From NCBI GenBank assembly GCA_002269645.1, contig NIVC01000542.1, positions 298,609 through 362,608 on the forward strand: a stretch of 64,000 bases of DNA, in the 5' to 3' direction. The stretch is from Macrostomum lignano (lineage: Eukaryota). Position 1 is the first letter of the stretch. The number at the start of each line of letters is the position of its first letter. Positions 13,907 through 57,289 of this stretch are shown here, piece after piece. The notes beneath the pieces were generated by a model that saw only the letters and a list, made by a program, of their open reading frames with translations, ran no database searches and had not been told where the DNA came from. A program made the position numbers and the translations under genes.

Positions 13907-14001
13907 AGTGTTGGCATCCGCGGCCAGCTCATCTTCGCTATGCTCGGAGCAGATGGCTGTGTCTGGCGAGGCCTGCACGAGGGAAGGGGCACAAGTCATG
14001 G
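13907..14001 (-). CDS. Possible alternative or first exon of the giant gene
   Basis: tttcag|CC ATG ..MTCAPSLVQASPDTAICSEHSEDELAADANT|gtgagt; strong phase-0 donor compatible with exon 13553-13720, but its acceptor phase does not match exon 14078-14166. Confidence 0.5.
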
Positions 14002-14077
14002 CTGAAACTCAATTCTTCATTCAGAGCTAGTTTGGTTTTTCTTCAATTAAATGGCTTTTATAGTTCAAAAAACTCAC

Positions 14078-14166
14078 AACGCGAAACTGGCTTTCCACCG
14101 AATGGGCCGTCTCATAGCGGCCAAACAGCTCCCTGAGCTTGTGGTACTGGCTGATCACATAGCCGT
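14078..14166 (-). CDS. Upstream exon of the giant gene
   Basis: Polypyrimidine tract then tag|..GYVISQYHKLRELFGRYETAHSVESQFRV|gtgagt; phase-0 donor fits exon 13553-13720. Further upstream exons were not identified. Confidence 0.65.
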
Positions 14167-14299
14167 CTACTCGGTTAGACTTGAGGGGCGAGAGAGGGAA
14201 ATGGAAAATTAATTCTGCGCCAGTCAATCATTGTGACCGAGCATTCACCTGCCAGAAAGCTTTTGAAAGCTCAATTTTCCTCTCTCATATAGCATAGCT

Positions 14300-17200
14300 T
14301 GTTAGAAAACCTGAATCTATTTGCAAATATATTGTATAAACACTAAAGCTCACTTCAGACAAAAGTTTTGCAAGCTCAGAGATATTTTCAAGGAGGACTG
14401 GTGTGTCAACTTCAGACATCAGTCATGGCTTGCTGGAAAATGAAAAACAAAACTATTGATAATAATGGGCATATGTGCACTTTTATTTGATTATGACAAG
14501 GTACTATAAATAACAAAGACAACAATATCTCCATAAGCCCTATGCTAATATTTGATTGTTGGATAACCAGTTTTATCTCAAATATCATTTACAAAGAATG
14601 GAAAGTTAGAAAATAAAAGAATAGAATAAAAATAAAAGTGTATGATTACTATAAGAAGCTGCTTTTGTATAATTCATCATTTTTTTCAATTTTACATCCT
14701 AGTATTGTTGCAAATACTTTTAGATCTTTGCTAAAAGAGATTTTAACAAACATTCCAATAATAGTATACTAATTAGGTATTATTGTATAGTAAAAAAATT
14801 TCTGATACCATAGCTATTATTTACAAATTAAACAATATAGCTTTATTAATATTTTCAGTACTAGAAAATATGAGCATACAACTTATCTTTTAAAACTTTT
14901 TCTTAAACTATTGATATTTTTCATCTGATCTTTATTAATGTAAAAAATATTTAACATATAGTTGAGTTAGGATTTATATAGACTTTGTTATTTATATTAT
15001 AGTACATATAGTACTTGGCTATAAAAATGATATGTAAATAACAATTTTTATACACCTAAAAAAGAATGGCAAGTTAATTATAGATACCTTTAAAGCCCTT
15101 TATCCAAAAGTTAGCTTAATAACAGAGATTATGCAAAGATTATGCCTTAAGAACAAAATATTTCTCATATACATACTAAGCTTTTTAGACCAATGAATTC
15201 CTAAGACTAATATAAGCCAATCAAAATATTATATTATTATATAATAACTTTTAATTGCCAACCCAAATTCATAACAAACATAGTCAGAATATCATATATG
15301 ATCTCTAATATAATATTAGCTATTTATTATACTAAAATGCAAAAAGTTTCAGCAATTGGCGTATAACTTTTTTGTTAAAATTTAATTGCAACATTTTTGA
15401 TCAGATGACTAGTGTCACAATAAGTCTATTTGTATATCTTTAGCTTATTACATGAATTTGTTATTTTACTAGACTTATTTAATTATAATATTGTATGTTT
15501 TTTCAGCCTTAAAATGGAAAACATATTGCTCAGTGGCAATTTTGTTTTCATGAGGTCACTGCTTGGCGAGAATGCCACAAAAATTCACCTTGACTTGGTT
15601 CAAGTCACAGAAGGTCAGGCCCTTTTGTATTGTACTGTTGTCTACTAGATTTAATCAACTAGTGCTAGCCTATGCTTTATGACTAATAATACTTGTTTTG
15701 GAAAACTAATTGTATCTATAACTAAGCAAAACATTGTGGCAATGCGGGAGCTAATGAACTTAAATTCAAATATTGCATGAACATCTTAGCCTTTGCAAGG
15801 TCATTGCTGGCTAGTTGCCTTATGTGCTGACTATTAAGCCTTGAAGCAGAAGCAAAAGAAAGTTTCATATAGCCAAGAATTTCTATCCTACTTTGGTGAA
15901 AGTGGTACCAAGCAACTTATTGACATTGTGACAGGTAATAAAGAATGGTTTTATTATATTGTCTTTGGTCCTTGGTTCTTATAAGGCAAATGGTAGACAA
16001 TAAGCTTAAGGTTATACTGCAACCACCTTAAAGCCTTAGCCCTAACTTGGAACCTTGTGACTTTCTTAATTGGAATAAGTTAAACAATGTGGATGGTTGT
16101 CTATCACCTATTAAATATTTTTCAGTGTCATATTGTGCAGATTTAAGAAGGCAAGCAATATTGTGTTGCAATAGAGGGTAGTATCACATTTTATGGCATG
16201 CTGCAATTGATAAGTGACAATGCTAGAAGTGTGGCCAGATTAATGTGGTGCAATACTATAGGAATAATGTAAGTATCATTTAAGACTTTGAATATAGAGT
16301 TTTAGAATGTTTAGAATGTTTCAAAATATTGGTTACCATCTATTATTTTCTACCATGCTTCATACTTTTTCAAATTATAATTTTTTGCATTATGCATTGG
16401 AACAATGTTGCATTGCATTGTACTTTTTTATACTTTTGTCTTGTTTACTGTGCATTTGAACTACTTTATTTTGCATTGGTGTTGTGGATCTATTTTTTAA
16501 TTACTTTAAGAGATAACTTCTGAGCCTTCTCAAAGCTAATAGAATACAGGGTAGGGTACCATTTTTTTAGCAACCTTAAGATCTAGTTTGCTGTATCAAT
16601 TTAGAGCTCAAGACTATGCTAGCTATTGAGTATTGTGTAGCCTTTAAGGCATGGATTTACTATCATCAGAAATGCATAGAGCAAGGCAAAGATCATATAG
16701 AAGGACTTTATTTGAGTTTTAAACATAACTAAAATATTTTAATATTTAGTTTTATTTTTCTACAAGCAAAGAATGTTTAGAAATTCTTTTTCATATAAAT
16801 GACTTGGTATCTTAATTTCATACTATTAAGTTAAGTAATATATTCTATACTTATAGACTTAATTATTGGAATAAATTTATTTCATAATATCTTTAGTTTT
16901 AGGTGTATTTGATAATTGTTTTTATATAAGAAAAGCCTAATATAGCATAGATAATATTTAATAACAAATAATACTTTAATAAGTTCTTCCTTATAGTTCT
17001 TAAAAGGAAGGCTAATCTTATATCTGATTATATTAATTGTCATATTAAATATTGTTAGGCTAATAAACTGAAATGCTATTTATTTTTTATAGATTCTAAA
17101 AATAATCAAATCTATAAAGATTGTTTTTATAGGCTACCTTAAATTAAAAGGCTAAAATAGAATCTATTTAACATTTATTCTATTTAATAATAAAATTAGT

Positions 17201-17480
17201 TAGATAACAACAAATTTTTCCTAGTTCTTATTTTAACATAAATAGAATTAATGCAAAATAATTGAAATATATTCTATATAGAAAAAAGTGAACCTATTCA
17301 TACAACTTTCATTAAAGATATAACTTATACAATGTATATAAGAGTATATATATAGAAGGGTGGGATACATATGATATACATCTATGCACATGCAATATTT
17401 AGCATTAGAAAAACCTTTTCAAAGGAATTTCATAAAAAAGAATATAATACTTTACAGTACCAATGATATATAATTAAATA
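14300..17480. other. AT-rich, nearly CpG-free block of decayed transposon sequence
   Basis: About 3 CpG seen by eye in about 3 kb (near 15360, 15567, 15745); abundant TA/TAG/CTA; contains a mariner relic. Confidence 0.75.
15773..16232 (+). pseudogene. Internally deleted, hypermutated mariner (DD34D) transposase relic
   Basis: 15773-15832 reads LHEHLSLCKVIAG*LPYVLT (mariner LHEHLGxRKxxARWVP[H/R]xLT); 15925-15957 IVTGNKEWFYY (IVTGDExWxYY); 16038-16064 SPNLEPCDF (SPDLAPCDF). Motif order is correct but spacing is short. Confidence 0.8.
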
Positions 17481-17510
17481 TACATGCGTGACCTTGGGAA
17501 TCACTTGGCA

Positions 17511-17921
17511 ATTTCTATTGGCAACATGCACATATAATTCGCTATTGGCTAAGAGCAGTCACGTGACTATTATTCTCATACATGCGCAACAGTCGGCCGA
17601 GTCGGCCGATCCGGCCGACCGATTTGGCGGCCAATCAAGGAAGTCGCAAAAATGCCCACCCAAAAAATAACCGAAGTAGTAGTACTAAGTAGCTGACGAG
17701 GCATTTTAGCTTAATAAAACAGTCATAGTTACTCCTGCCGTTTACCCAAAGTTGCGTTAATTTTGCTTTTGGGTTTTTTTATATGTAAGTCGCATTTTTG
17801 GCCAAAAACTATGTCGCATTTTTGTTAAAACTAAGTCGCACGGCTGACCGAATTTTGGAGGTTGCACATGTATGATTATTCTGTCTAATAGCAACTTAAA
17901 TGTGTGTTGCCAATAGAAATG
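17511..17921. mobile_element. Non-autonomous transposon-like element with 16-bp inverted repeats and repeated GTCGCA motifs; CpG-rich copy
   Basis: atttctattggcaaca near 17511 is inverted to tgttgccaatagaaat at 17906-17921; interior is homologous (reverse complement) to 58887-59165. Confidence 0.6.
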
Positions 17922-19033
17922 GCTGGGAAAATCCTTAGGTTGCTCCCAAGCATTATAACAAGTGTTCAATTTAATGTGCCTTCTTTCATATTATATTAGG
18001 GCCTGTAACTTAATAATAAAATAGGCTAGACATCATGCCCATCAAAACCTGTCTTGTACACTTTTTAAACCTGTGCTAAATGCAACACTAAGGCCTATTT
18101 ACTATAAACCTAAATAATAGTACATGTTTTTTTTCTTCTAACTCTATGCAAGAAGTCTATGCTGGATCTGTCTAGGCCTAATTATGTATAAAATTGACTT
18201 TCTATTTGGGCATCAGCAATTATGAGCAGCTAAGCTAAGCTACAGAAGCTTTTACTGTATATAGTCTATATAGACTAACTAGAAAAAAGGTAGCTCATGC
18301 CTCATGCAAGGCCATACTAAACAAGTTGAATAATTTTAAGCTTTTAAAGGTGGGTGCCTTATGCCAGACATAACCCTAAGACATAACCTAAGAATAAGAT
18401 TAATGTAAGGAGATAGCTAAATTCTTTAACCAATACTCAAACATACTCAAACCTACTCACAACGGGTATCCCTCACAGTCACAACCATACTACACTTAAC
18501 AGTACAGATAATAATGCAGGTGCCGGTTACATTATTGGCGAAAGTGTCTTTTCGCCGAAATGACTGTAACCCAACTATGCAGCTACGCGGTTCAAACAGC
18601 CATATTAAATATGAAGTTTTACAGTTCTACAGGCAATATACTAATATAATTGTCACTGCCAGTGCTGCTGCAGGACAGGACCGTACGTACAACTAAAGCA
18701 AAAATGAAAAAAATGCTTACGAAAATGGAAGTCAAAATAATAAGATATGTTTCTTCGTTAACAATAAATTTTTCTCTTTGCAATAGTATAAATATTGAAT
18801 TTCCTTAATAAAGTCACTAGATGACAGCCCAAAAAATAAGCCATAATGTTCCTTTATTTTTGTCTTGTTTATACGCATTTAAGCCGGTGTTTTTTAGACT
18901 GTTAACTCAACTGTTGACTTGCAAATGAAATATAGCAAAAGGTAACATTATGATACAATGGGTCCTCGCTTTAGCAATTTTAAGTTGTATGAGGTTTTAA
19001 TTTTAAGGACCACTGTATATGGTCCTTTGTATA

Positions 19034-19211
19034 CCCGTACAGAAATCCGACGTCGGCGACGTCTTGTTGCCGATGTTTCCGACGTAATGGCAGATACATT
19101 TTGACGTCCGTCGATATGTAACATAATAAGCACATATTTATTGTCATCCGACGTCGATAGACGTCAAGAACGTCGCAGCCAGACGTCGCTGACGCCGGAC
19201 TGCTGTACGAG
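19034..19211. mobile_element. 178-bp MITE with about 55-bp imperfect TIRs rich in GACGTC (CMC/EnSpm-like)
   Basis: Termini cccgtacag .. ctgtacgag; flanked by ata on both sides (19031-33, 19212-14); inner arms cagaaatccgacgtcggcgacgtc vs rc cagcagtccggcgtcagcgacgtc. Confidence 0.65.
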
Positions 19212-19942
19212 ATATGACATTCGATCGTCGTCTAAACTTCCACAACCACATGTATCTCTACATGTACATCTGACTGCTGCATACATATAGAATAGAGCTG
19301 CCAACAATAAGCTGTATACGGATCACTCGGAATAATGCTTTGCACCAGTGCGTGGGCGGCACTAATTCAAATTAGGTGGCCTCCGGCAGCAACTTCAAAG
19401 TGGAATTTGTTGAAGCGAGGGAAGCCTCGCATGCAGCATGCGGCTCCTGTGATGTCAAAACCATCAGATGTCAGCTTCTTAAACTGTTATTTGGGGGCTG
19501 CGGAGGGTGCATTCTCTTGATTTTCCGTAAACATGGTGGCACAGCAGCCGCTTCATTTAGCCATTCAGGCGCATCCGAGTAAACAATCTGGACTGTCAAG
19601 CATGAAGTGTCTGCACGGAGCGGCTGTTCCTGCAGGACTGACTTCAGTCAATAAGAGCCGGTTCTTTGTGTCAATTTGTCTATTATAGTATTGGCCAAAC
19701 ACTCCGAAAACGACTGCAGCAGTAGCCAACTGGCTTCTTACGGAGTTGTTGCTAAACTTTACAAGGGTTCAGTGGATTGCTATAAAAAGACAGGCGGCTG
19801 TGCTTTGAAGTTTTGCAGAGCAAGCATGAAGAGCTAAAAAAATAACTGCATGGCCGGAGGCCCAAAAGATGGAAGAAAACTTTCGCCCTATTCGCCTGAT
19901 TCGAGTCAATTTGTCGGGACTTTATAATGTTCAACCGTGTTT

Positions 19943-20405
19943 GGGAATTTGGCAGGGAATCCATCGGGAATTTTCCAGGGAATCCATAGGAAATTTGGTA
20001 GGGAATCCATAGGGAATTTGGTCCGGGAATCTATAGGGAATTTGGCAGGGAATACATAGGCAATTTGGCAGGGAATACATAGGGAATTCGGCAGGGAATC
20101 CATAGAGAATTCGGCAGGGAATCCATAGGGAATTTGGCAGGAAATCCATAGGCAATTTGGCAGGGAATCCATAGGGAATTCGGCAGGGAATCCATAGGGA
20201 ATTCGGCAGGGAATCCATAGGGAATTTGGCAGGGAATCCATAGGGAATTCGGCAGGGAATCCATAGAGAATTCGGCAGGGAATCCATAGGGAATTCGGCA
20301 GGGAATCCATAGGGAATTCGGCAGGGAATCCATAGGCAATTTGGCAGGGAATCCTTAAGGAATTTGGCAGGGAATCCATCGGGAATTTGGCAGAGAATCC
20401 ATAGG
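19943..20405. repeat. 23-nt minisatellite, about 20 copies
   Basis: Unit ggcagggaatccatagggaatt(t/c). Confidence 0.95.
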
Positions 20406-21258
20406 TAAGGAATGTATGAAAGGTATGAAAGGTATGTCCCAGCATAGTACGAGCTCACATCAAAATATGCTTTTTCGGAGTTTCAGTTTTTTGTGTAGCT
20501 AAACTAAATTGACATGCCCCTCGCTGCCAGAAAACAAAAACTGAGACGAAAACGAGTTTTTCAATGGCAGTCACGAGCCATGAGTAGGAAAGAACGGGGG
20601 CAAGGGATGCTAAAAGTGAAGATCGAGCAAAACACAAATAACTGGCTCAGATTAGCATTTCACTCTTTCCTCCAATGGCCGCTGCCCTCAAAATAAAGAC
20701 CATAGACGATTAACTAAACTTTGGATATACAGTATGAATATCTTGTGCGTGAGCACTAACATCCGACAGTGGAAAAAAATTTCGCAGCTGAACTTGGAAA
20801 GCGAAAGAGGAGAGCAGGGTCAGAAAGGAAGTAAAGATAGGGAGAGTGGGCAGTGGGATGAAGAAAGAAGGAATAGCAGAAGAGGAAGGAGAAAATGAGA
20901 AAAAGACGGAGAAAAACAACCGTTATATACTAAAGAAGCGTAAAAAGGAACTACAGGAACAGCATGGGACCATCTCAAAGGTTATTTATATACCGATTAG
21001 TTTCAAAAGTTTTGAGGGGAAAATGAATGAGCAAGAGGAAATTCACGTGGCCTTGTGGCAGCCATCCGATGCTTATGCAATGCAGGGGTCAGTCAGGGAC
21101 AGGGAAGCCTGTAGGGAGCTGGGCTCGCCGCCGATCCAACGCAGCCAATGAGCCGCGCTCGAGAGCCCCTGCGCTGCCCAATCCTCACCTGCTGACTTCC
21201 GAAACTTTGCCAGCCCAAAAATGCGTTCCTGCAGCCAGCAACAAAGTGAACCATTTTC

Positions 21259-21607
21259 ATGACCAACGCAAGCAGCCGCGGAATGCATTCTGTGGACAGC
21301 CATTGCCGTCACCCAGCTCAGCCTCTGGTTTTCCAGTTTCCCCAGCATTATTACCAGCATCAGCATCTGCAGCACCTGCAGCCTCATCCGCAGCTCTGGC
21401 CCAGCTGCTCTTGCTGCTCCAGCAGCCCCGTCTGCAAGCGGCCGCCGGTCCAGGCCGCCTTCCGAGCTGCGCCACCCGGCCAGAAGGCCGCCTCTGGCGA
21501 CGAGGCTGTCCGGGATGCGCCACCTCCGGGAACGCCAGCTGCGGAATTTGCCGCCACCACGCCGGCCTTCAAGTGGCTGAGCGTCCGCCGACCAGCAGCT
21601 TCTCATG
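21259..21607 (+). CDS. Hox1: labial/Hox1-class homeobox gene, exon 1
   Basis: Q/H-rich ORF ending in hexapeptide AFKWLSVRR (Hox1 type TFDWMKVKR); donor CATG|gtgagg, phase 1. Start ATG is the first in this frame and is not proven. Confidence 0.82.
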
Positions 21608-21617
21608 GTGAGGAAAA

Positions 21618-21862
21618 GAAAAACAAACAAATAGAAAAACAAACAAATAGAAAAACAAACAAATAGAAAAACAAACAAATAGAAAAACAAACAAATAGAA
21701 AAACAAACAAATAGAAAAACAAACAAATAGAAAAACAAACAAATAGAAAAACAAACAAATAGAAAAACAAACAAATAGCAAACAAATAGAAAAACAAACA
21801 AATAGAAAAACAAACAAATAGAAAAACAAACAAATAGAAAAACAAACAAATAGAAAAACAAA
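21618..21862. repeat. 16-nt tandem repeat, about 15 copies, in the Hox1 intron
   Basis: Unit gaaaaacaaacaaata; starts 10 nt after the donor. Confidence 0.95.
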
Positions 21863-24020: not shown

Positions 24021-25870
24021 CCCTCTTTTAGTTTTCCTCATCTCTGTCTTTTAGTTTCCCTCTTTCCCTGTCTTTTAGTTTCCCTCTTTCCCTGTCTTTT
24101 AGTTTCCCTCTTTCCCTGTCTTTTAGTTTCCCTCTTTCCCTGTCTTTTAGTTTCCCTCTTTCCCTGTCTTTTAGTTTCCCTCTTTCCCTACCTTTTAGTT
24201 TCCCTCTTTCCCTGTCTTTAAGTTTCCCTCTTTCCCTACCTTTTAGTTTCCTTCTTTCCCTGTCTTTTAGTTTCCCTCTTTCCCTGTCTTTTAGTTTCCC
24301 TCTTTCCCTACCTTTTAGTTTCCCTCTTTCCCTGTCTTTTAGTTTCCCTCTTTCCCTACCTTTTAGTTTCCCTCTTTCCCTGTCTTTTAGTTTCCCTCTT
24401 TCCCTGTCTTTTAGTTTCCCTCTTTCCCTGTCTTTTAGTTTCCCTCTTCCCCTGTCTTTTAGTTTCCCTCTTCCCCTGCCTTTTAGTTTCCCTCTTCCCT
24501 GTCTTTTAGTTTCCCTCTTTCCCTGTCTTTTAGTTTCCCTCTTTCCCTACCTTTTAGTTTCCCTCTTTCCCTGTCTTTTAGTTTCCCTCTTTCCCTGTCT
24601 TTTAGTTTCCCTCTTTCCCTGTCTTTTAGTTTCCCTCTTTCCCTGTCTTTTAGTTTCCCTCTTTCCCTGTCTTTTAGTTTCCCTCTTTCCCTACCTTTTA
24701 GTTTCCCTCTTTCCCTGTCTTTTAGTTTCCCTCTTTCCCTGTCTTTTAGTTTCCCTCTTTCCCTGTCTTTTAGTTTCCCTCTTTCCCTGTCTTTTAGTTT
24801 CCCTCTTTCCCTGTCTTTTAGTTTCCCTCTTTCCCTGTCTTTTAGTTTCCCTCTTCCCCTGTCTTTTAGTTTCCCTCTTCCCTGTCTTTTAGTTTCCCTC
24901 TTTCCCTGTCTTTTAGTTTCCCTCTTTCCCTACCTTTTAGTTTCCCTCTTTCCCTGTCTTTTAGTTTCCCTCTTTCCCTGTCTTTTAGTTTCCCTCTTCC
25001 CCTGTCTTTTAGTTTCCCTCTTCCCCTGCCTTTTAGTTTCCCTCTTCCCTGTCTTTTAGTTTCCCTCTTTCCCTGTCTTTTAGTTTCCCTCTTTCCCTGC
25101 CTTTTAGTTTCCCTCTTTCCCTGTCTTTTAGTTTCCCTCTTTCCCTACCTTTTAGTTTCCCTCTTTCCCTGTCTTTTAGTTTCCCTCTTTCCCTGTCTTT
25201 TAGTTTCCCTCTTTCCCTGTCTTTTAGTTTTCCTCATCTCTGTCTTTTAGTTTCCCTCTTTCCCTGTCTTTTAGTTTCCCTCTTTCCCTACCTTTTAGTT
25301 TCCCTCTTCCCCTGTCTTTTAGTTTTCCTCATCTCTGTCTTTTAGTTTCCCTCTTTCCCTGTCTTTTAGTTTCCCTCTTTCCCTACCTTTTAGTTTTCCT
25401 CTTCCCCTGTCTTTTAGTTTTCCTCTTTCCCTACCTTTTAGTTTCCCTCTTTCCCTGCCTTTTAGTTTCCCTCTTTCCCTGCCTTTTAGTTTCCCTCTTT
25501 CCCTGTCTTTTAGTTTCCCTCTTTCCCTACCTTTTAGTTTCCCTCTTCCCCTGTCTTTTAGTTTTCCTCATCTCTGTCTTTTAGTTTCCCTCTTTCCCTG
25601 TCTTTTAGTTTCCCTCTTTCCCTGTCTTTTAGTTTCCCTCTTTCCCTACCTTTTAGTTTCCCTCTTCCCCTGTCTTTTAGTTTTCCTCATCTCTGTCTTT
25701 TAGTTTCCCTCTTTCCCTGTCTTTTAGTTTCCCTCTTTCCCTACCTTTTAGTTTTCCTCTTCCCCTGTCTTTTAGTTTTCCTCTTTCCCTACCTTTTAGT
25801 TTCCCTCTTTCCCTGCCTTTTAGTTTCCCTCTTTCCCTGCCTTTTAGTTTCCCTCTTTCCCTGTCTTTTA
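24021..25870. repeat. 24-nt pyrimidine-rich satellite, left segment
   Basis: Unit ctgtcttttagtttccctctttcc with recurrent variants (ctacc, ttttcctcatctctg). Confidence 0.97.
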
Positions 25871-26157: not shown

Positions 26158-27924
26158 TCAAAACACCCTAAGAAGGTGGCCCGCACCACTATGTAGCAAT
26201 TGCACATTGAGACTGGGATTTTGAGCTTTGATGTGCAGCGCTTCAAGAATGCTAAGCTTGAATTCAGAGTTAGCACGGTCGATAATTTTAAACAATCCAA
26301 TCTGTTCTCTGTCACAGCAGCCCTTGCATTCCAGAAGGTGGTCCTGGATAGCAGATTTTTTCAGCCAATGCTCCCTAACTCTGGTGTGCAGGTGTCTTTT
26401 GGTTTTTCCCACGTAAGAGATATTCTGATCTTCAGAACAACGAAATTTATAGACTACACCTGCACCTAGAGCACGAGGAACACGGGACTTGAGATTGCTG
26501 ACAAATTGACCCACCTTGGCAGTGCGAAAGACAATCCTAATCGGAGTGTTGTACCATTTCCGAAAAGATCTCTCAAGCTTCTTTTTCAACAAGATAGACG
26601 GGATACCATAGAACGGCAAGATCATCACGGGGTCATCCGGCTTTTTACTATGATTCTGTTGCAGTCTGCCAGTAACCTTATCAGTGACAAACTTGAAAAT
26701 CAACCGACTAATGAGATTTTTTGGGTATCCGTTCATACTGAAAATCCTAGTCAAATTTTTCACCTCCTCATCAAACGCAGCCCAGGAACTACACAGAGAG
26801 TAAGCTCTGTGCAGGATACAATGGATCAGGCCAATATTCCACTGTTTCGGACAGAGGGCATTGAAATTCAACAGTAAACCAGTAAACGTGGGCTTGCGAT
26901 AAACCCGAGTAGAGACTTGGCCACTGCTCAGATCAACCTCAACATCGAGAAACGGAAGTTTTTTACCTCCCATCTCAACGGTGAATTGGATGTTGCTGTG
27001 GGTTGAATTCAGAGCCCGAAAAAACTCTTGGTACTTAGCCCGGTCATCAAAAATGACAAAAGTGTCATCGACATAGCACTTGTAGAAAGTTGGCGCACAC
27101 TCAAGCGACATCCACTCCGTTTCCCAGTGCGCCATGCAAACATTGGCCAGAGTAGGAGCAAGCGGGCTTCCCATGGCACAACCATCAATCTGGCGATAAT
27201 ATTTGTCATCAAACATGAAGATGCCAGAGGTAGCGAAGCCTAACAACTTTTTGAACACAGTCTTTGGTAACCCAGGCGGATTCATATTGTACACATGATC
27301 AGTGGCGAGATCAATAGCCAGCTTCAAAGGGACATTGGTAAAAAGCGAAGTCACGTCAAAACTGCAGAGAAAATCCTCACTTTTCGGACTGATTTGACTC
27401 AAGGCTTGAATGAACTGGCAATTAGAGTTGACGGAGAATTCCTTTGGTATGCATGGTTTGATCAGAGAATCCAAGTATCTGGCCAGTTCATACTCAGCAG
27501 TGTTAATCGTAGACACAATCGGTCTCAGCGGTTTGTCAGGTTTGTGAACTTTGCAAAGGCCGTACAGCTGGCCAGGTTGGCTGCCATTCGGCATAATGCG
27601 CTTAAGAATCTCATTGCTAAGATGCTGCTTGGCATGGGTCCTCAAAAAAGTCTGAAGAGATCTCTCAGCTTTGAGAACAGGATGAGCCATAGTGACCTCA
27701 CTCACAGTTCCAAGACATTGAAATTTAGCCTGATCCTGCACAATGCAATTAAGCTTATTCTTGTAGTCATCACTATCCATGATAGCAACGCCGTAGCCTT
27801 TGTCATAGCCAACAACCTTGATATTGTCATTCCCTTTAAGCTGCTTCAGCGTCTGATGAAAAAGCCTGTTCTGCTTACTAGAAATGCTGTTCTGAGCCCT
27901 AGACAAACTGGTCAAAATCAACAA
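26158..27924 (-). CDS. Penelope-like reverse transcriptase with GIY-YIG endonuclease (N-terminus truncated or frameshifted)
   Basis: DKG, GQLYGLCKVHK, PLRPIVS, FDVTSLFTNVP, GCAMGSPLAP, YVDD, LPFLDV, VYRKPT, YVGKTKRHLHTRVREH, EALHI. Confidence 0.93.
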   Translation of the reverse strand: MLILTSLSRAQNSISSKQNRLFHQTLKQLKGNDNIKVVGYDKGYGVAIMDSDDYKNKLNCIVQDQAKFQCLGTVSEVTMAHPVLKAERSLQTFLRTHAKQHLSNEILKRIMPNGSQPGQLYGLCKVHKPDKPLRPIVSTINTAEYELARYLDSLIKPCIPKEFSVNSNCQFIQALSQISPKSEDFLCSFDVTSLFTNVPLKLAIDLATDHVYNMNPPGLPKTVFKKLLGFATSGIFMFDDKYYRQIDGCAMGSPLAPTLANVCMAHWETEWMSLECAPTFYKCYVDDTFVIFDDRAKYQEFFRALNSTHSNIQFTVEMGGKKLPFLDVEVDLSSGQVSTRVYRKPTFTGLLLNFNALCPKQWNIGLIHCILHRAYSLCSSWAAFDEEVKNLTRIFSMNGYPKNLISRLIFKFVTDKVTGRLQQNHSKKPDDPVMILPFYGIPSILLKKKLERSFRKWYNTPIRIVFRTAKVGQFVSNLKSRVPRALGAGVVYKFRCSEDQNISYVGKTKRHLHTRVREHWLKKSAIQDHLLECKGCCDREQIGLFKIIDRANSEFKLSILEALHIKAQNPSLNVQLLHSGAGHLLRVF

Positions 27925-28038: not shown

Positions 28039-30020
28039 CCCTGTCTTTTAGTTTCCCTCTTTCCCTACCTTTTAGTTTCCCTCTTCCCTGTCTTTTAGTT
28101 TCCCTCTTTCCCTGTCTTTTAGTTTCCCTCTTTCCCTACCTTTTAGTTTCCCTCTTTCCCTGTCTTTTAGTTTCCCTCTTTCCCTACCTTTTAGTTTCCC
28201 TCTTCCCCTGTCTTTTAGTTTCCCTCTTCCCCTGTCTTTTAGTTTCCCTCTTTCCCTGTCTTTTAGTTTCCCTCTTCCCCTGCCTTTTAGTTTCCCTCTT
28301 TCCCTACCTTTTAGTTTTCCTCTTCCCCTGTCTTTTAGTTTCCCTCTTTCCCTGTCTTTTAGTTTCCCTCTTCCCCTGCCTTTTAGTTTCCCTCTTTCCC
28401 TACCTTTTAGTTTCCCTCTTCCCCTGCCTTTTAGTTTCCCTCTTTCCCTACCTTTTAGTTTCCCTCTTCCCCTGTCTTTTAGTTTCCCTCTTTCCCTACC
28501 TTTTAGTTTCCCTCTTCCCCTGCCTTTTAGTTTCCCTCTTTCCCTGCCTTTTAGTTTCCCTCTTCGACTGTCTTTTAGTTTCCCTCTTTCCCTACCTTTT
28601 AGTTTCCCTCTTCCCCTGTCTTTTAGTTTTCCTCATCTCTGTCTTTTAGTTTCCCTCTTTCCCTGTCTTTTAGTTTCCCTCTTTCCCTGTCTTTTAGTTT
28701 CCCTCTTTCCCTGTCTTTTAGTTTCCCTCTTTCCCTACCTTTTAGTTTCCCTCTTCCCCTGTCTTTTAGTTTTCCTCATCTCTGTCTTTTAGTTTCCCTC
28801 TTTCCCTGCCTTTTAGTTTCCCTCTTTCCCTGCCTTTTAGTTTCCCTCTTCCCCTGCCTTTTAGTTTCCCTCTTCCCCTGCCTTTTAGTTTCCCTCTTCC
28901 CCTGCCTTTTAGTTTCGCTCTTCCCCTGTCTTTTAGTTTCCCTCTTTCCCTACCTTTTAGTTTCCCTCTTCCCCTGTCTTTTAGTTTCCCTCTTCCCCTG
29001 CCTTTTAGCTTCCCTCTTCCCTGTCTTTTAGTTTCCCTCTTCCCTGTCTTTTAGCTTCGCTCTTCCACTGTCTTTTTCTTCCCCTGCCTTTTAGTTTCGC
29101 TCTTCCCCTGCCTTTTAGTTTCCCTCTTTCCCTGTCTTTTAGCTTCGCTCTTCCACTGTCTTTTTCTTCCCCTGCCTTTTAGTTTCGCTCTTCCCCTGCC
29201 TTTTAGTTTCCCTCTTTCCCTGTCTTTTAGTTTCCCTCTTTCCCTGTCTTTTAGTTTCGCTCTTCCACTGTCTTTTTCTTCCCCTGCCTTTTAGTTTCGC
29301 TCTTCCCCTGCCTTTTAGTTTCCCTCTTTCCCTGTCTTTTAGTTTCCCTCTTTCCCTGTCTTTTAGTTTCCCTCTTTCCCTGTCTTTTAGTTTCGCTCTT
29401 CCACTGTCTTTTTCTTCCCCTGCCTTTTAGTTTCGCTCTTCCCCTGCCTTTTAGTTTCCCTCTTTCTCTGTCTTTTAGTTTCCCTCTTTCCCTGTCTTTT
29501 AGTTTCGCTCTTCCACTGTCTTTTTCTTCCCCTGCCTTTTAGTTTCGCTCTTCCCCTGCCTTTTAGTTTCCCTCTTTCCCTGTCTTTTAGTTTCCCTCTT
29601 TCCCTGTCTTTTAGTTTCCCTCTTCCCTGTCTTTTAGTTTCTTTCTTCCCCTGCCTTTTAGTTTCCCTCTTCCCTGTCTTTTAGTTTCGCTCTTCCCCTG
29701 CCTTTTAGTTTCCCTCTTTCCCTGTCTTTTAGTTTCCCTCTTTCCCAGCCTTTTAGTTTCCCTCTTTCCCAGCCTTTTAGTTTCCCTCTTTCCCTGTCTT
29801 TTAGTTTCCCTCTTTCCCTGTCTTTTAGTTTCCCTCTTTCCCAGCCTTTTAGTTTCCCTCTTTCCCTGTCTTTTAGTTTCCCTCTTTCCCTGTCTTTTAG
29901 TTTCCCTCTTCCCCTGTCTTTAAGTTTCGCTCTTCCACTGTCTATTAGTTTCCCTCTTCCCCTGTCTTTTAGCTTCCCTCTTTCCGAGTCTTTTAGTTTC
30001 CCTCTTCCCTGTCTTTCAGT
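28039..30020. repeat. 24-nt satellite, right segment, degenerating distally
   Basis: Same unit as the left segment; new variants (tttcgctcttccactgtctttttt) from about 29050. Confidence 0.96.
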
Positions 30021-30025
30021 TTATA

Positions 30026-41892: not shown

Positions 41893-44385
41893 CGCATGTA
41901 CATTACGGTACGTACTGTTAACTACTTGCAGGGCCTCGCTTCGCCTCGTTCGGAAGTTTGTTTCAGCATATCCGCCGGCGTTGAAGTTCAGAGACTTCCT
42001 GTACGAAGGAGAATCTGAATAACATAACTGTGCTAATTTCTACGGGACGTTAAAGAGGCATTTGGCAAGATCTGAACGACGCCACATCTGACAGTAGTGT
42101 TACACTAAGTACATGTATCATCTTGTCCTGATGTACCGGTATAGTCGTACATGCAGTGACTTTGCTGTGTTTTCTTATCGCCAAAATCAATTGCAATGTA
42201 CGTATATATAATATCCAGGACCACGAAGAGGCAAGTTTTTTTCGGTCCTGAAATCAGCATGCACCCAGTCAAATAAACAATTTTTCAATAAATTGCATTG
42301 ATTCATGATAGTGGTAACAGACAGACCCGAATCCAGAAAATTTTAGAGGCGCGGGGCCCGCCGGGAGGCAACCTGCGAAAATGATATAGTGTCACTATTG
42401 TAGGTCCAAAAATTGTTTCAGTTGAGGGGGCCATGGCTCGCTGGACCAGAGTAACACAACAAACTTAAATTTTAATACAATGAAAGACGATTCAGATTAA
42501 TAAAATAATTAAAAATTTAATTACAACCAACAAAAATAGTTATAATTTTAACAAAGTCAAAAGTAATTTTGCTCCAAAGATAAAAATTATATGTCAAATT
42601 ACTCCTACTTAGTGACTATTAGCTTAAAAAGCTGTTTATTTTTTAATTTAAAAATCATATTTGCAGCTGAGCACTATGTACAAATGAAAAACCATCTAAT
42701 CACTCTTATTCCACGAAACTGGTCCTCTAATGAAGGCTCAAGTCCTAGGCCTACTTGAAGTTGTAGGAGTAGACCAAGACTATTTAAGTTGAGTCGTCCT
42801 TGTTATAGAGTTGAGCGTTGGCATAACCCTAATGGGTGGTTCTTTTAAGCATCATCTTTTGAAATTGAAGTTAGGCCCTATCATCCAGAAAATTCAAATT
42901 TATTATGAGTGAGCCCTACGCCTATTTGTAGGTCTTAAGGTCTACGAACCCTATGACTTGATTTGTTGTTTTTGCTGTTTAGGTGTTTTGTGTGATAAAT
43001 TAGGCCTATAAATAAAAAAGATTACATTTTTCTATTTAAATTTTTGGCCTAATCATTCCTGCATGTCCTAAGCCTATAGCCACCTTCCGGCTTCTGCCCC
43101 GGCCCACCTAAACTTCTAAAGAAATGATTTATTTATTTTTTTTAATCAAGTTAGGCTTAAGACTAGGCCTAGACAGGATATAGAGGAATAGTTTTGGATT
43201 CCCACTCTAAATTATTATAACTTTTTTTCGCACTTTTTAGCCAATGGCAGGCCAACCTGCAATGCCCACAACCATTTACCATTGTATCTTCTGCAGAGCT
43301 TTAGAACAGCTTTGTCCTGTGCAATCTGGCTGTCAATCACTGGACTAAAGGTATCTGTATCTGTACAATGGTTATGGGCACTGTAGGTTGGCCTGCCATC
43401 AGCTGAAAAGTTCAAAAAAGTTAAATTAATTTTGAGTAGGAATCTGAAACTATGCCAATATAGATACCCTATCAAGAGATTATTTATTTGTTAATTCTAA
43501 TATAAATGATATTAGACCTTAGTTAAGTCAAACTTGGAGTTAGACTAGGGCCTAACTAGTAAACCAAAAGCTTATTTATATAGTTTATAAAAGAAAGGCA
43601 TTTTATGATTTTACTAATCTGTATTCTACATTTAATATGCCATCTATTAGGCCTAGACCTACGTATATAATAATATATTTTTTGTGAATAATATAATACT
43701 TTATAAATAACAATGGATCTTTTATTTAATTTTATCTTAATTAACTAATTAACTAATAAACAACTAATAAATAAACAATTAACTAACAATATATTTAGCA
43801 ACTAATTTTTATTTTCTATTGAAGTGTTTGTACTTTGTCTAGTTGGTCTGGAGATAGCCTGGCAGGTCTTGAAATCCTACCACTGCCACCAGTGAAGTAC
43901 ACACTGTTGTTTGCTTTCCAACCAGTCATTTAGGCTATTGGCCAACTCTCCTAGGAAGCCTCCTAGTTGCTCTTAGTAGCATTGGTTTGGTAGATGCTGC
44001 CACCAGCTTGCTTGGATCTTGTTCTTCAATGAGGGAGACTGCGAGCTAAGCAAAATAAACAAGACTCAGGAAATCAGCATGCCATGTAGATTTGACAATT
44101 AGCACCGGTGCATACCTCATCAGCAGTCTTGCTAGGCTCAAGTGCAGGGATTGGGAACTGTGCTAGTTCTCATTAGCTTGGTTGAGATTATCTGCACAAG
44201 CTCAGTCACATAGTCAAAGATGGATCCAAAATTAGAATGGAGTTTGCAAAGGCTAGCGCAAGATGCGCAAGTCTTATAAGTCAGGACAATGCTTAGTCCA
44301 AACTTATAAAATGAAGGGCAGTCAAGAGATAGGTGAGAGGAAAGGTCAGAATAGAACCAGGGTTGCCAAAACAAAGGCACGAGAG

Positions 44386-45935
44386 TAGTGATGGATCAAA
44401 ATTCGATTTTGATTTTGATATTCCAAATTTCAAAACTAATTTTGCATCAAAATAATTTCAATTTCAATTTCGAATTTTGACACCATTCATCAAAAATCAT
44501 TTTGAAATTTTGGTTATATTTTAACAATTTAGACATTGATGATCATGCTACACAAGTAAGAAAATCTATAGGAAGTGAAAGGAAGTGCGGTTCAAAGACT
44601 CAGTGGGGAGGTGAGAATTGCCTTTTCTACAAGAAAAGATTATGCGGGGCACACGCTTTTCCAGGCCTTGTGCTGCACCCACCTCAACCTCCACAAACCC
44701 ACTGGCTGAACTCATTGGCGTGGATTTTAATTGGCTAAAGACTTAAAGCCTTAATGAAATGGATATAGCTTAAACAGCTTTGGATATAGCTTAAGCTTAA
44801 ATAGCTTAAATGCTTAAATAGCAGTGAAGTATAATATAACTTCTGGCTGATTCCATATAAGCATGGTCGTAACATGACAGGCTATTTTTACTTATAAAAT
44901 GAAATATAATAATAGAATATACTAAACCAATATTTTAAAGGAAAGATAATTTTGTCAAAAATATTTTTATAGAGTTTCATGTAGATATCATCATTAGTAT
45001 AGATGCTATTAAACCTTGAATGGCACTTATGGTTGTAACAACAGGATTTTTGACATATAGAAACTAAAAAACAAAATTTTTGATATTTTGCAATACATTT
45101 TTTAAAATTTGACTAAGAAAATCTTTAGTAATCATACTCTTTTTGTAGAATATATAAACTCAAAAAGGCAACAAAGATACAAAAGAAAAGGCAGCCTTAT
45201 GGTCGTAACATTATGGTCGTAACATATTTTTTTCTGTCAATTCAGTAACTTTAAGGTACCAATATATTAAAAATATAATAGATTATTTGGTCACCAATAC
45301 TTTTATCTGATGATGCAAGTACTATACTTTTATCTATAGTTTGTTTCAACCTTCCAAAGCTTTCTATTTGTTTTTAAAAGGTACACAAACTTAATGATGT
45401 CTTTTGCTTAGAAAAATGTCTAAATTTTTACAAAAATGACTTTTTGCCACTTGATAGCATACTAATCTAACATTTTATCATTCATTTATTCTTAGATTGT
45501 AGATATTACACATAAAAAACATTTGGTAAAAAAATTGGCTGATAAGGCAATGGCAAGCAAAAATATTGACTTTTTTCTATTTTCCAAAAATGTCCATCTT
45601 ATATGGAATGAGCCTTCTACTATATTTCTATGTACGAGTTTAAAATACATAATACACCAGCATTTTCTATTTCGTATTTTTAAAGTAAGTTAAATCTTAA
45701 GTATTCTGGTTTAAACATATCAAATATACTTTTTATAAAACATGTAAGCTCATACATGCAAAGGCAAGGTGTTAACCTTTTTGCATGATTAGCAAAAAAG
45801 TAAAAATTTGTTAAGCTCAAAAAAATTCGATTTCAATTTCAATTTCGATTTCAATTTCAATTTCGATTTCAATTCCAAGGAACCAAAAAAATTGATTTCG
45901 ATTTTGATTTGAAAAATAATTTCGATCCATCACTA
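44386..45935. mobile_element. Non-autonomous hAT-like element (1,550 bp)
   Basis: TIR tagtgatggatc(a/g)aaatt; 8-bp TSD cacgagag (44378-85, 45936-43); subterminal (tttcga)n repeats. Confidence 0.9.
44845..45614. mobile_element. 770-bp DNA transposon nested in the hAT element, 4-bp TSD
   Basis: TIR ggct(g/c)attccatataag; TSD ttct (44841-44, 45615-18). A 4-bp TSD is Sola-like, superfamily uncertain. Confidence 0.75.
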
Positions 45936-47165
45936 CACGAGAGGCCCATACTTATAGGATAGCAGATTGATTTCACCATACAGTGCAATCCCCCATTGCA
46001 CCAGAGTACGCAAGGCTGCTCTCACTGCGCCCCCAACCTGAACCTGGCATGATTCAGTTCTATTTTTAGAAACAAGTGTGACGCCTGGCTGGGGAGGCAA
46101 GATCACTATTCCTAATTTAGAAACTGACACCCAAGATTGCACAAGGTGGCACAAGAAAAGGACAGAGTGCCTAGGGCACATGATCTGCTATTGTACAAGT
46201 TGGAAGGAGAGTACAGCCTGAACACTGAACTCAGACTAAACAAATGCAGCCATACAAGAAAGGGGGAGAGAGGCCAGATAGACAATGAACCAAGAGCAAG
46301 CTAAGCGGAGGAGCTCAGACACTGGGAAGGTGGAGGAACCAGAAAAAGGGGGCAAAGGAGGAAATACAAGTAGCCAAAAGGACAAATAGGGCCAAAGGGA
46401 AAAGGAGAGGGAGAAAGGGAAATGAGAGGGAGAGAGAGAGCTGCAACCAGTGGCAGTCAACAGCTCAAAGGCCGCAGGGAATTGCTAACAAAACTGGGGC
46501 ACCTAATACTAAATTAGTGCTCACTTTACTAGCACTTTTAGTTATGATATTCTCTCGAGTGAAACATTATAAATAAGAAGTACACATACAAATACATATA
46601 AGTTCTGGAACACAATCATTTTAAGACAATTTTTGTATTTAAATGCTTATCATCCTCTAAAACTAAAATAGTATACAAAGTGCTCATTTTACATAGTTCC
46701 ATGATTACTTGAAAGCTACATTGACAAGAAGTTCTATAGTTTCAGAACAAAATCATTTTAAGGCAGTTTTTATATTTAAATGATTGTTATCCAAAATTAA
46801 TATAATACACAAAGTGCTATTATAAGTAATATTTATACAAATAGGCCAATATAATCACAAGTAAATTTAAAAAGTCAATTAGACCTATTAAAAATATAAT
46901 ATTATTAAAATAAACACAATATGATTAGATATTATAAGCTATAGCCATGATTTATAAGTACTTGATATAACTACAATTCAATTATAATATATAATATATT
47001 ATTATATTATAATAATAATATACAAAATTTGCCAAAAGAAAGGCATGAGAGGCCTGTACTTATAGGATAGCAGATTGATTTCACCATACAGTGCAATCTC
47101 CCATTGCACCAGAGTACGCAAGGCTGCTTTCACTGCGCCCCCAACCTGGCATGATTCAGTTCTAT
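45936..47165 (+). repeat. About 125-bp direct repeat pair (45936-46065 and 47044-47165)
   Basis: Five substitutions, all C/T or G/A, plus one 6-nt indel; the first copy is the hAT target site. Confidence 0.9.
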
Positions 47166-47980
47166 TGTAGTTATATCAAGTACTTATAAATCATATATAT
47201 ATATATATATATATAGGTCAAACAGTGGCTATATGAGCTACCATGTATTGTTAGGCATCATAACATTTAATTCTGTGTTATTTGTAATAGTTTCTAGAAG
47301 GTCATACCAATCGATAGCCTTATTTTGTCTAGTCAATGTTGTTGGTCTAGTTTAGGAAAAAATGTGACAAATATCCATGTTTCCTATAAGCTTGACTTTG
47401 ATAATAGCTTTCTAAGGTAAAAATTGTATTCTTAACTAATATCAAGAATAGACTAAGATAGACTGAAACATTTAAACAACTCTAGCAACTTCTTGGTCTT
47501 TACTATCACTATAATTACTCATATTATCATAGAAAAGATAATAAATGCTAGCATAATTCAAAAATGCAGATTGGATATTGTTAGGCTCTAGCTAAGAAAG
47601 ATATTGAAAAATTCACCAAAATACTCTTGTCATGCTAATAATAAATTTAGAAGTGTATTAATCCAACCCATAGAGATACAATGCAGAAAAACCAATGAAT
47701 AAAGATAGTTTAAACTTGTAATAAGTCTATATACCCTTTGGCCTTAAAAAGCATGTCTTTACATGTGTTGTGTCTAACAATTGAAGCCAAACTTGTCTAT
47801 ATAGATCTTTAAACTATGATTATTGTACTGTATCACTACTCACAATAGGAACAATGCTATTCCAGATTTGCCAATGAATTTCTCTCTATTAACAACCTTT
47901 TATAAGCTTTGTTATATACAATAGCCTTTCAAGGTACTAACCAATTGTTGCAATGGAAACCTCATGCTTGTTAAGATATT

Positions 47981-48174
47981 GGGCTGTATGTAGAAAGCTC
48001 TGTCTAGGGTAGTCTGGTCTTGAAAAGCTAGTCTGGACTTGGATTTGGTATGCAGAAACACAAAGTTAGACTGGTCTACTATAGACAGAACTAGGGTAGC
48101 TAGACCATAGACCATAGACTGAACTACCCAAGTCCGGACTAGCTAGTCTGGACTAAGCTTTCTGCATATAGCCC
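47981..48174. mobile_element. 194-bp PIF/Harbinger-like MITE
   Basis: TIR gggct(g/a)tatg(t/c)agaaagct; 3-bp TSD att. Confidence 0.75.
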
Positions 48175-48465
48175 ATTGAGTATATAATCTAGTTTTCAAC
48201 TCAGCTAAAGTCATACTTAAGTTTGTTTTAATGGTTTCTTCAATGAAATCTAGCATCTCTTTTAAACCTAAGTAAATGAGACCTCCCTTATAATTTGTTA
48301 CAATTGGCTGAAAATAGATGCTTTACAAATTTGTACTTAATGGTTGGCAGCTGTTAGAACTGATTGACTATATATTGGAAGTACATGCAAACTGTTAAAA
48401 TTTGTATTGTAGTTTGTTGAAACTGGTTGAAAACCAAAGCTGCCACAGCCAAAAAGGGTCAGAAT

Positions 48466-48759
48466 CAGATGCCAAACCTATTAAAATTGGTTGCAGGTAT
48501 TTCAAAACTGAAAGTGAAAAGGTGTATGGTTTAATTAACTTTATACTAATGGAATCCCATATGCAGATGCCAAACCTATTAAAATTGGTTACAGGTATTT
48601 CAAAACTGAAAGTGAAAAGGTGTATGGTTTAATTAACTTTATACTAATGGAATCCCATATGCAGATGCCAAACCTATTAAAATTGGTTACAGGTATTTCA
48701 AAACTGAAAGTGAAAAGGTGTATGGTTTAATTAACTTTATACTAATGGAATCCCATATG
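48466..48759. repeat. 98-bp tandem triplication
   Basis: cagatgccaaacctattaaaattgg.. at 48466, 48564, 48662. Confidence 0.93.
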
Positions 48760-49478
48760 CTAAAAATGAGTTTTTTGGGTATGCAGTAGATTTCAGAAAA
48801 AAATTCAGACAAATATTCTAAAGTGGAGTATAAGATGTTTTGTCTAGAGTTTTTATTTAAGTAAGTCTTTTTGTCTAAGAAAGATTGTCATTTGAAAAGT
48901 ATAATATTTTATCTTAACTTTGGGAATTAGTCTAAAAATACTTAATTTCATTTATAATCTCATTTTAGCCACAATTTGTATTCTACCATTTTGGGCTTGT
49001 AGTCTAGATCATAATAAATTTATTCTAGGAACAAATTCTCAATATGCATGGCAATGCATGGGGAAAAGAAATAAAACATTAGAGTGTTGCAACTGGCTAC
49101 TGGAGCAAAGAAGTATTTTTAAAATTAAGTTGCATGGCCAGTGTAAACTAGTATGGTTTTGAATGTGTGACTTACCAACCAAGGCTTTTCTAAGGCTAAA
49201 TGTGCACAGGCACATATTGCAACCCAAAAAATCATAAGTTTTTATTTTACACTAGAAATTTCTAGCATAATTGGCTAGTGGTTTGTTTTAAACTTATATG
49301 TGACTGTTTTATATGTAGTGACTGTTTCACATAGCCAGTGAGTCAATATACACAACTAAATCTTATCCAGATTTAAATGAGACACAAAAATCTTCTTTCT
49401 TGTTTTGTCAGATCCCCAATGCACAACTTTCTCTAACTCGCGCTTATCTCCTGCTCCTCAGCTCTTAGCGGTCTCAAC

Positions 49479-49973
49479 ATGCCCGACTACCTCGGTGCCG
49501 ACCAGCGCAAGGTGAAGGACGACAAAGCCTCCGCCGTGCCCGCCAAGGACCTGGACGAGGGCGACATCGCCCTGATGAAGACCTACGGCGCTGCTCCGTA
49601 CAGCGAGGAGACCAAGAAGTGCCAGGAGGACATGGACGCCATCATGAAGCGAGTCATCGAGCTGACGGGCATCAAGGAGTCCGACACGGGCCTGGCGCCG
49701 CCCGCCCACTGGGACCTGGCAGCGGACAAGCTCGCCCTGCAGAACGAGACCCCGCTGCAGGTGGCCCGCTGCACAAAGATCATCAACGCGGATTCAGACG
49801 ACCCGAAGTACATCATCAACGTGAAGCAGTACGCCAAGTTTGTCTCCAACCTGGCTGACACCGTCGCTCCCACCGACATCGAGGAGGGCATGCGGGTCGG
49901 CGTGGACCGGAACAAATTTCAGATCCACATCCCGCTGCCGCCCAAAATTGATCCCAGCGTCACCATGATGCAG
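49479..49973 (+). CDS. PSMC2: 26S proteasome ATPase Rpt1, exon 1
   Basis: [41 protein letters not shown]|gtgcga. Confidence 0.97.
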
Positions 49974-50015
49974 GTGCGATTAGAACCCATGTGCTTCGTT
50001 TCGAGTATTAGGTAT

Positions 50016-50567: not shown

Positions 50568-50642
50568 TTTATGATTGGCCTCAAAACTTACGCTTTGCCG
50601 TGTGCGCCCCAGCTTCACCAGTCCGTTTCCTTGCCCGCTTAG

Positions 50643-57066: not shown

Positions 57067-57289
57067 ATGAGTGTGTGCCGAAGAGCTGCTATAACAGCTA
57101 ATTCTTCATTGGCAAAGGTAGCTTCGATCCCTACTCCCTTTTCTAAAAGCCCAATTCCTTTTTTGCCTCCACCCAAGCATGTAAAATTCGATTATGGTGT
57201 CCAAGTTGCTCTTACTCGTCAAAGAGCAAAATCATTTTCACCATTTCTATCTACACCTACGAACATGTCTGTCATTGCTGGTTTTCAAG
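57067..57289 (+). CDS. UQCRFS1: Rieske Fe-S protein, exon 1 (mitochondrial presequence)
   Basis: MSVCRRAAITANSSLAK..SVIAGFQ G|gtaaat; basic, Ser-rich, almost acid-free; phase 1 matches the acceptor at 60818 giving ..[15 protein letters not shown]. Confidence 0.72.

Follow-up and report, generated by a model that had tools for sequence, protein, structure and literature searches.

Context-ordered C-to-T decay of a mariner-like relic in an AT-rich block of the Macrostomum lignano genome

Deamination of 5-methylcytosine (5mC), as known from vertebrate repeats, removes CpG dinucleotides gradually, symmetrically on both strands and in proportion to age, and ends in near-total CpG loss with an excess of TpG and CpA. 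Repeat-induced point mutation (RIP), the RID-dependent process of fungi such as Neurospora, produces C>T and G>A changes with the order CpA>CpT>CpC among non-CpG sites and leaves AT-rich blocks of dead transposons, and a heterochromatin-dependent arm (DIM-2/DIM-5) mutates single-copy DNA between repeats through a conventional DNA methyltransferase pathway (PMC12543289, the source of the RIP features used for comparison here). DNMT3-type enzymes methylate cytosines outside CpG, at CpA and especially at CAG and CAC, in mammalian oocytes, embryonic stem cells and neurons. Here we describe a mariner-like transposase relic in 64,000 nucleotides of the flatworm Macrostomum lignano (assembly GCA_002269645.1, contig NIVC01000542.1; C542:298609-362608, hereafter the window), for which an earlier note, made from the sequence alone, had proposed a RIP-like, repeat-targeted hypermutation reaching CpA. 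The relic is an old mariner-like insertion that decays in place by slow, block-wide and strand-symmetric C>T change, probably in a methylated domain and possibly with DNMT3-type non-CpG methylation.

The decay shares with vertebrate CpG loss all of the properties named above, together with the presence of DNMT1 and DNMT3. It differs in being confined to AT-rich blocks of a mosaic genome and in its unusually strong non-CpG tail, with CpA changed ~4-7 times as often as CpC; methylation of the locus is something we infer. In the human germline, the 3' neighbour has a far smaller influence on non-CpG C>T. With RIP the locus shares the type of change, the non-CpG order and an end state in which dead transposons lie in AT-rich blocks; unlike RIP, the decay is independent of duplication, has CpG as its prime target, leaves CpA unexhausted and is slow, and no RID-type enzyme was found among the PF00145 matches. 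As in the DIM-2/DIM-5 arm, the effect is domain-wide and reaches non-repeated DNA inside a repeat-rich, AT-rich block, although in Neurospora flanking duplication is the trigger and one sexual cycle the time scale, whereas in M. lignano no such trigger is seen and the time scale is evolutionary. The order CpG >> CpA > CpT > CpC and a mild CAG preference resemble DNMT3-type non-CpG methylation, which is known from mammals as an epigenetic mark; in the flatworm it would visibly drive the decay of germline sequence, a role not known for it.

The relic and its damage

The assembly searched comprises 764,410,778 bases in 5,269 contigs, and all statistics below come from the window and 74 loci (~300 kb). 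The relic, on the + strand at ~15329-16740, is what remains of a mariner-like transposase, with its middle deleted and a foreign insert of 465 bp. When an intact mariner-like open reading frame (ORF) of 365 amino acids (aa) from locus L015 of the same genome was compared with the window by tblastn, aa 3-177 aligned with 15484-15957 (E=1e-31, 44% identity), aa 281-316 with 15990-16100, and aa 318-365 with 16565-16708 (63% identity). Residues 178-280 in the numbering of the intact relative, ~100 codons between TGDE and the SPDL segment, are missing, and the HDNA region is gone. The left part (15329..15957, + strand) holds a decayed left terminal inverted repeat (~15329-15362), a helix-turn-helix N-terminal region, the HLG..WVPH and TGDE motifs, and an in-frame TAG at 15812-15814. 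The SPDL segment (15990..16100, + strand) carries the (Y)SPDL..CDF motif, at present reading *SLSPNLEPCDF, and is followed by the insert (16100..16564), a fragment of another repeat lying in the gap between aa 316 and aa 318; 16068-16304, which covers part of it, matches loci L004-L006 at ~70%. The C-terminal part, to which aa 318-365 align, occupies 16565..16740 (+ strand).

At the DNA level the relic matches the consensus of its nearest family, family A, from consensus position 14 at 15339 to position 1281 at 16732, with 16516-16732 corresponding to 1067-1281. The consensus has inverted termini of ~33 bp, of which the left is still recognisable in the relic; inspection of the right end revealed no recognisable terminal repeat. 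The intact L015 relative carries the WVPH, TGDE, HDNA and SPDL motifs of a Tc1/mariner transposase with a DDD catalytic domain, and in Pfam it falls narrowly short of the cut-offs for DDE_3, HTH_48 and Transposase_1 (23.2 bits where 24 is required). Its HHD and SPD aspartates (L015:980-2336) are 29 residues apart; the canonical mariner spacing is 34. Judging from this spacing and the sub-cut-off scores, it is a divergent Tc1/mariner lineage.

The earlier note was right to see a mariner relic in an animal genome, but the element is larger than the 15773-16232 assigned to it, and the supposed RW motif (TGC TAG at 16221) falls inside the insert from the other repeat, where D-N-A-R-S (~16216), in a different frame, is the more natural reading. 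The codon changes listed in that note were checked by setting the relic against the DNA consensus of family A, and they hold: TGG>TAG in the W of WVPH (15812-15814), CAT>TAT in the following H, GGC>AGC after T in the G of HLG, GAT>AAT and GAG>AAA, each after T, in the D and E of TGDE, and GAC>AAC after T in the D of SPDL all create TpA. The same motif stretches also bear CpG>TpG changes (CGC to TGC, GTC before G to ATT, TGC before G to TGT) and transitions at CpC and CpT. Over ~740 aligned sites, the relic has T at 51% of consensus C in CpG, 40% in CpA, 31% in CpC and 23% in CpT; the odds ratio of CpA against CpC and CpT together, from these consensus-comparison counts, is ~1.9. The reverse change, from consensus T to relic C, affects 7-13% of sites and is highest at TpA (0.133 versus 0.07-0.08 in other T contexts). 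Transitions in the relic are thus very strongly skewed towards GC-to-AT whatever the context, with a mild CpA excess. That the damage is specifically TpA-creating is borne out only weakly in this copy, in which CpG, CpC and CpT are hit too; a choice of examples made up of stop codons and of changes that follow T favours TpA from the outset.

Dinucleotide frequencies show strong CpG depletion with a matching excess of TpG and CpA (CpG observed/expected, o/e, 0.06; CpA o/e 1.32; TpA o/e 0.90; TpA/ApT 0.99). The RIP substrate index, (CpA+TpG)/(ApC+GpT), is 1.49 and the composite index -0.5, so that the RIP substrate is in excess where RIP requires its depletion. Across the ~300-kb sample (600 windows of 500 bp overall), the windows with GC<0.30 have a median CpG o/e of 0.11, a substrate index of 1.25 and a composite index of -0.22.

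C-to-T spectra in repeat families and homeologs

The base composition of the window is mosaic, blocks with GC ~0.30 and CpG o/e 0-0.5 alternating with DNA of GC 0.45-0.6 and CpG o/e ~0.8-1.0. The relic lies in one of the former, at 14001-18900 (GC 0.31, CpG o/e 0.42, falling to 0.00-0.14 around the relic). A genome search with the relic locus found only two further full-length copies, on C3894 (98%) and C4169 (92%). The M. lignano genome consists of three subgenomes (S, L1 and L2) with a published single-nucleotide divergence of ~2%, and both copies are subgenome homeologs and not transposed copies, because their colinearity with the window extends through more than 10 kb of flanking DNA. The remaining matches do not exceed 77% identity over at most 230 bp, and all belong to the related family A (~47 genome matches). 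Mariners as a whole are abundant and healthy, with at least 1,404 candidate Transposase_1 places in the genome and open frames of 350-410 aa in many of the 150 that were scored.

Twenty-four copies of family A (consensus 1,335 bp, GC 0.485) give polarised C>T rates per opportunity of 0.278 at CpG, 0.071-0.072 at CpA, 0.043 at CpT and 0.019 at CpC, and 96% of the consensus CpG positions are hit. Among unique events CpA exceeds CpC (odds ratio 3.1, p=4e-7) and CpT (2.2, p=3e-4), and the CpA excess persisted when the count left out 22 consensus CpA sites that are possibly ancestral CpG and admitted only sites with an unchanged neighbour. In three independent lineages of old copies (L012, L025 and L030; 14-20% diverged, GC 0.37, CpG o/e ~0.07) the rates reach 0.86 at CpG, 0.235 at CpA, 0.130 at CpT and 0.060 at CpC, and T>C runs at 0.052 at TpA, 0.031 at TpT and 0.021 at TpC. 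At pyrimidine-A (YpA) steps in these copies C>T (0.235) thus stands against T>C (0.052), and C>T exceeds T>C 4-5 fold in the polarised family data. Tabulated by 3' neighbour against a consensus, CpA therefore lies above CpC and CpT, and the CpA preference seen in the earlier note is real; CpG is nevertheless mutated 3-4 times more than CpA, both in the old family A copies and in the AT-rich homeolog stratum described below. C>T and G>A are balanced in the old copies (26/26 at CpA in L025, for example). The load rises with transversions, which amount to 0.3-1.4% per site in less diverged copies and 2.8-5.2% in the four oldest, and, relative to transversions, CpA transitions are about as frequent in copies diverged by 3-7% as in those diverged by 14-20%. 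A load in step with transversions indicates gradual accumulation and not a burst.

Families B (16 sampled copies) and C (8 copies) show where such changes accumulate. Ten of the 16 family B copies (L051-L060, on ten contigs) are 99.9-100% identical over 3.2 kb including flanks, with at most one change each, and in family B overall 209 sites in each of 16 copies yielded a single CpA event. Family C is nearly clean except for the insertion L042/L049, whose flanks have GC 0.30 and CpG o/e 0.07 and which carries 6 CpG and 4-5 CpA transitions and no more than one change of another kind. Of its five siblings, all but L047 have 0-1 CpA and 0-5 CpG changes, and those in GC-rich flanks of normal CpG content have 0-1 CpA changes. 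As near-identical family B copies are clean and the family C copy is hit in AT-rich flanks, it is location and not repetition that attracts the mutations.

Two further observations concern these copies. In L051-L060 the family B copy sits within a larger unit, with the same in-frame TAG in all copies, and the unit looks like a recently amplified non-autonomous composite. In L042/L049 all seven independent CpA-type changes are G>A on one strand, five of the seven in CTG (CAG on the opposite strand), whereas the old family A copies are strand-symmetric.

Homeologs provide a comparison across whole loci. In alignments of five homeologous locus pairs, each site was assigned to a stratum by the GC content of a 301-column window, and rates were counted as C/T differences per conserved C; tandem arrays had inflated CpC and CpT differences in the GC-rich stratum in a first pass and were masked before the test was repeated. 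The AT-rich stratum (11.4 kb) gives 0.259 at CpG, 0.086 at CpA, 0.051 at CpT and 0.013 at CpC, with 0.0095 transversions per site, and the GC-rich stratum (5.7 kb) 0.097, 0.028, 0.031 and 0.020, with 0.0061 transversions per site. The odds ratio of CpA against CpC is 6.7 in AT-rich DNA (p=3e-11) and 1.4, not significant, in GC-rich DNA, and most of the CpG differences in the latter (34/61) belong to a single mariner copy situated in an AT-rich block. Three independent pairs repeat the AT-rich pattern (CpA 49/334, 43/340 and 23/309; CpC 3/124, 3/145 and 0/165). The context order is confined to the AT-rich, CpG-poor DNA, and since both strata are duplicated to the same degree, homology is not the trigger.

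Within the block at 14001-18900, the relic part has rates of 0.158 at CpA, 0.076 at CpT and 0.047 at CpC. The stretches 14050-15300 and 16760-17460, which have no genomic match besides the two homeologs, have 0.083, 0.055 and 0.015, and the rest of the block 0.217, 0.119 and 0.045. The single-copy flanks thus show the same CpA>CpT>CpC order, on small counts, which speaks against the repeat targeting that had been proposed. Compared with C4169, window positions 14001-21700 diverge by 7-13% over most of the AT-rich block and mostly by ~2-8% in the adjoining GC-rich DNA outside tandem arrays, and the excess in the block consists almost entirely of C/T transitions.

The triplet CAG is the most mutable form of CpA in young and middle-aged family A copies (25/60, versus 36/154 for other CAN), and in the AT-rich homeolog stratum it stands at 0.118 versus 0.065-0.093 for other CpA triplets (p=0.06). 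Symmetric CWG methylation of the plant CHG type was considered and rejected, as CAG is mildly raised but CTG is not.

Candidate causes of the decay

Twelve PF00145 matches represent just three genes, DNMT1, DNMT2 and one like DNMT3, each in three copies (contigs C3325/C866/C112, C33/C2943/C2045 and C305/C2545/C3236), the number expected for the S, L1 and L2 subgenomes. DNMT1 has a BAH-like exon upstream and matches DNMT1 in PDB at E=2e-64, DNMT2 is identified at E=4e-26, and the DNMT3-like gene matches DNMT3A at E=3e-18; the introns of all these genes are full of GC-rich tandem arrays. A fourth, RID/Masc1-like class of methyltransferase is not present among the PF00145 matches, although without a phylogeny a very divergent enzyme could be missed, and a search of the genome with APOBEC_N returned no match. 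Of the enzymes named in the earlier note, DNMT1 and DNMT3 were thus recovered and the RID-like and APOBEC classes were not. M. lignano has been reported to keep DNMT1 and DNMT3 and to have low 5mC (PMC11292947), and a 2022 review gives methylation patterns as unknown in free-living flatworms (PMC9246332); our literature search found no M. lignano methylome.

Decay in a methylated domain would have begun with a mariner-like DNA transposon inserting before the split of the three subgenomes. The insertion would sit in an AT-rich block that DNMT1 and DNMT3 methylate in the germline, and deamination of methylated C would cause slow, strand-symmetric C>T change across the whole block, in the order CpG >> CpA > CpT > CpC and with a strong general GC-to-AT bias beneath it. 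The AT-rich blocks would then be germline-methylated domains and 5mC deamination would drive their CpG loss. DNMT3 prefers CpA>CpT>CpC outside CpG, and such off-CpG activity may give rise to the tail of the same order. TpA stop codons such as TGG>TAG are the expected end products of so long a decay and not the mark of a RIP-like defence. In a more specific and distinctly tentative form, the M. lignano germline may methylate whole AT-rich blocks of old repeats at CpG, substantially at CpA (preferring CAG) and at CpT, and deamination may erode anything landing there.

Several points weigh against a methylated domain as the cause. The family C copy L047, the remaining sibling of L042/L049, has one AT-rich flank and 8 CpG transitions but only one at CpA. 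T>C at TpA is ~2 times that in other T contexts in the old family A copies (p=0.045), and the relic shows the same; cytosine methylation does not explain this excess, which hints at a more general YpA effect. The homeolog differences are unpolarised, their direction being taken from the polarised family data, and the third homeolog is too close for polarising (C542 and C3894 differ by ~0.4%, giving 68 polarised changes only). The ~300 kb sampled from a 764-Mb genome were mostly drawn around mariners. Finally, it is the link of the decay to 5mC, and above all to non-CpG methylation, that we infer.

The YpA effect leads to the main rival, a methylation-independent regional bias by which AT-rich and presumably heterochromatic or late-replicating blocks would acquire more transitions at pyrimidine-A steps in both directions, through repair or replication, with CpG loss a separate matter. 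We consider this unlikely, although T>C is indeed highest at TpA (0.052 versus 0.021-0.031 in the old copies, and likewise in the relic) and the effect spans the whole block independently of copy number. Against it, the CpA excess coincides exactly with strong CpG hypermutability, and the CpA>CpT>CpC order and mild CAG preference fit the off-target preference of DNMT3. Local melting of AT-rich DNA was rejected as an explanation: CpA rates do not depend on the 5' neighbour (ACA 0.095, CCA 0.081, GCA 0.081, TCA 0.083), A/T has no effect over G/C there or at +2, and CpC is not raised in AT-rich DNA.

That a true RIP-like, homology-triggered mutagenesis struck the mariner family while its copies were many, and has since become inactive or weak, is very improbable and already largely refuted by several independent tests. 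The non-CpG order does agree with RIP in Neurospora, dead elements form AT-rich blocks in the genome, and one young copy (L042/L049) bears a small one-strand cluster of CpA changes. However, CpG is the top target and CpA and TpG are in excess; the near-identical 3.2-kb units and many intact mariner ORFs are untouched; and the whole genome is triplicated at 90-99% identity, yet its duplicated GC-rich DNA has no CpA excess. The same spectrum, moreover, occurs in DNA without another genomic copy, the load is proportional to transversions, and the PF00145 matches yield only DNMT1, DNMT2 and DNMT3. What survives of the proposal is that the mutagenesis reaches CpA (in old copies 0.235 versus 0.060 at CpC; odds ratio 6.7 in AT-rich homeologs) in a genome with a DNMT3 gene; that it is RIP-like, repeat-targeted or a hypermutation does not. 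Editing by an AID/APOBEC-like deaminase of single-stranded DNA is more improbable still: C>T and G>A transitions do predominate and the CpA-type changes of L042/L049 lie on one strand, but the genome has no APOBEC_N match, the older and heavily mutated copies are strand-symmetric, the rates just given show no 5'-T or WRC preference, and a cut-and-paste DNA transposon has no obligatory single-stranded complementary DNA stage.

Neighbouring features and implications

Two other AT-rich, CpG-poor blocks, delimited like the first by GC and CpG o/e, lie at ~42300-48900 and ~56000-60900. Within the block of the relic, a 300-bp, CpG-rich element at 17576-17876 resembles a miniature inverted-repeat transposable element (MITE). 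Its inverted termini are 14 bp long (CATACATGCGCAAC / GTTGCACATGTATG), and the target duplication (ATTATTCT) has 8 bp. The insertion is very recent, because homeolog C3894, although 99% identical, has an empty site there, and related copies occur in at least nine sampled loci. About 100 bp at 17460-17570 come from a short repeat of very high abundance, for which the genome has over 1,000 candidate places, and some of its matches pair inverted. The 300-bp MITE family and a repeat at 58923-59148 were tried as further test families and dropped, their copies being too few and too short.

Elsewhere in the window, a Penelope-like ORF on the minus strand (26158-27924) matches RVT_1 and, weakly, GIY-YIG. 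It is flanked by two arrays of the same 24-bp satellite (24024-25870 and 28039-30022), with an extreme strand skew (GC skew -0.6, AT skew -0.75). An exon starting at 49479 closely resembles the N-terminus of the animal proteasome ATPase PSMC2/Rpt1. In the stretch 49479-50642 this first coding exon, of ~175 codons, passes directly into an intron that consists of a 33-bp tandem array and in which the reading frame stays open.

The claim of RIP in an animal does not stand, and this matters, as such a claim would be striking. What the sequence by itself indicates is that this flatworm, which has retained DNMT1 and DNMT3, has a genome of sharply mosaic make-up: in the AT-rich blocks CpG is lost 12-20 times and CpA 4-7 times as fast as CpC, and the adjoining GC-rich DNA is almost without context effect. 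Methylation of the blocks offers an explanation for the bimodal base composition of the M. lignano genome, and we predict that the first M. lignano methylome will show the AT-rich, old-repeat blocks to be methylated, with measurable methylation at CpA. Should the germline indeed methylate whole blocks at CpG, CpA and CpT, M. lignano would possess an animal equivalent of the heterochromatin-dependent RIP arm of fungi, one targeted at domains, and the process would give rise to AT-rich 'isochores' of dead transposons bordering on unmethylated, GC-rich DNA.

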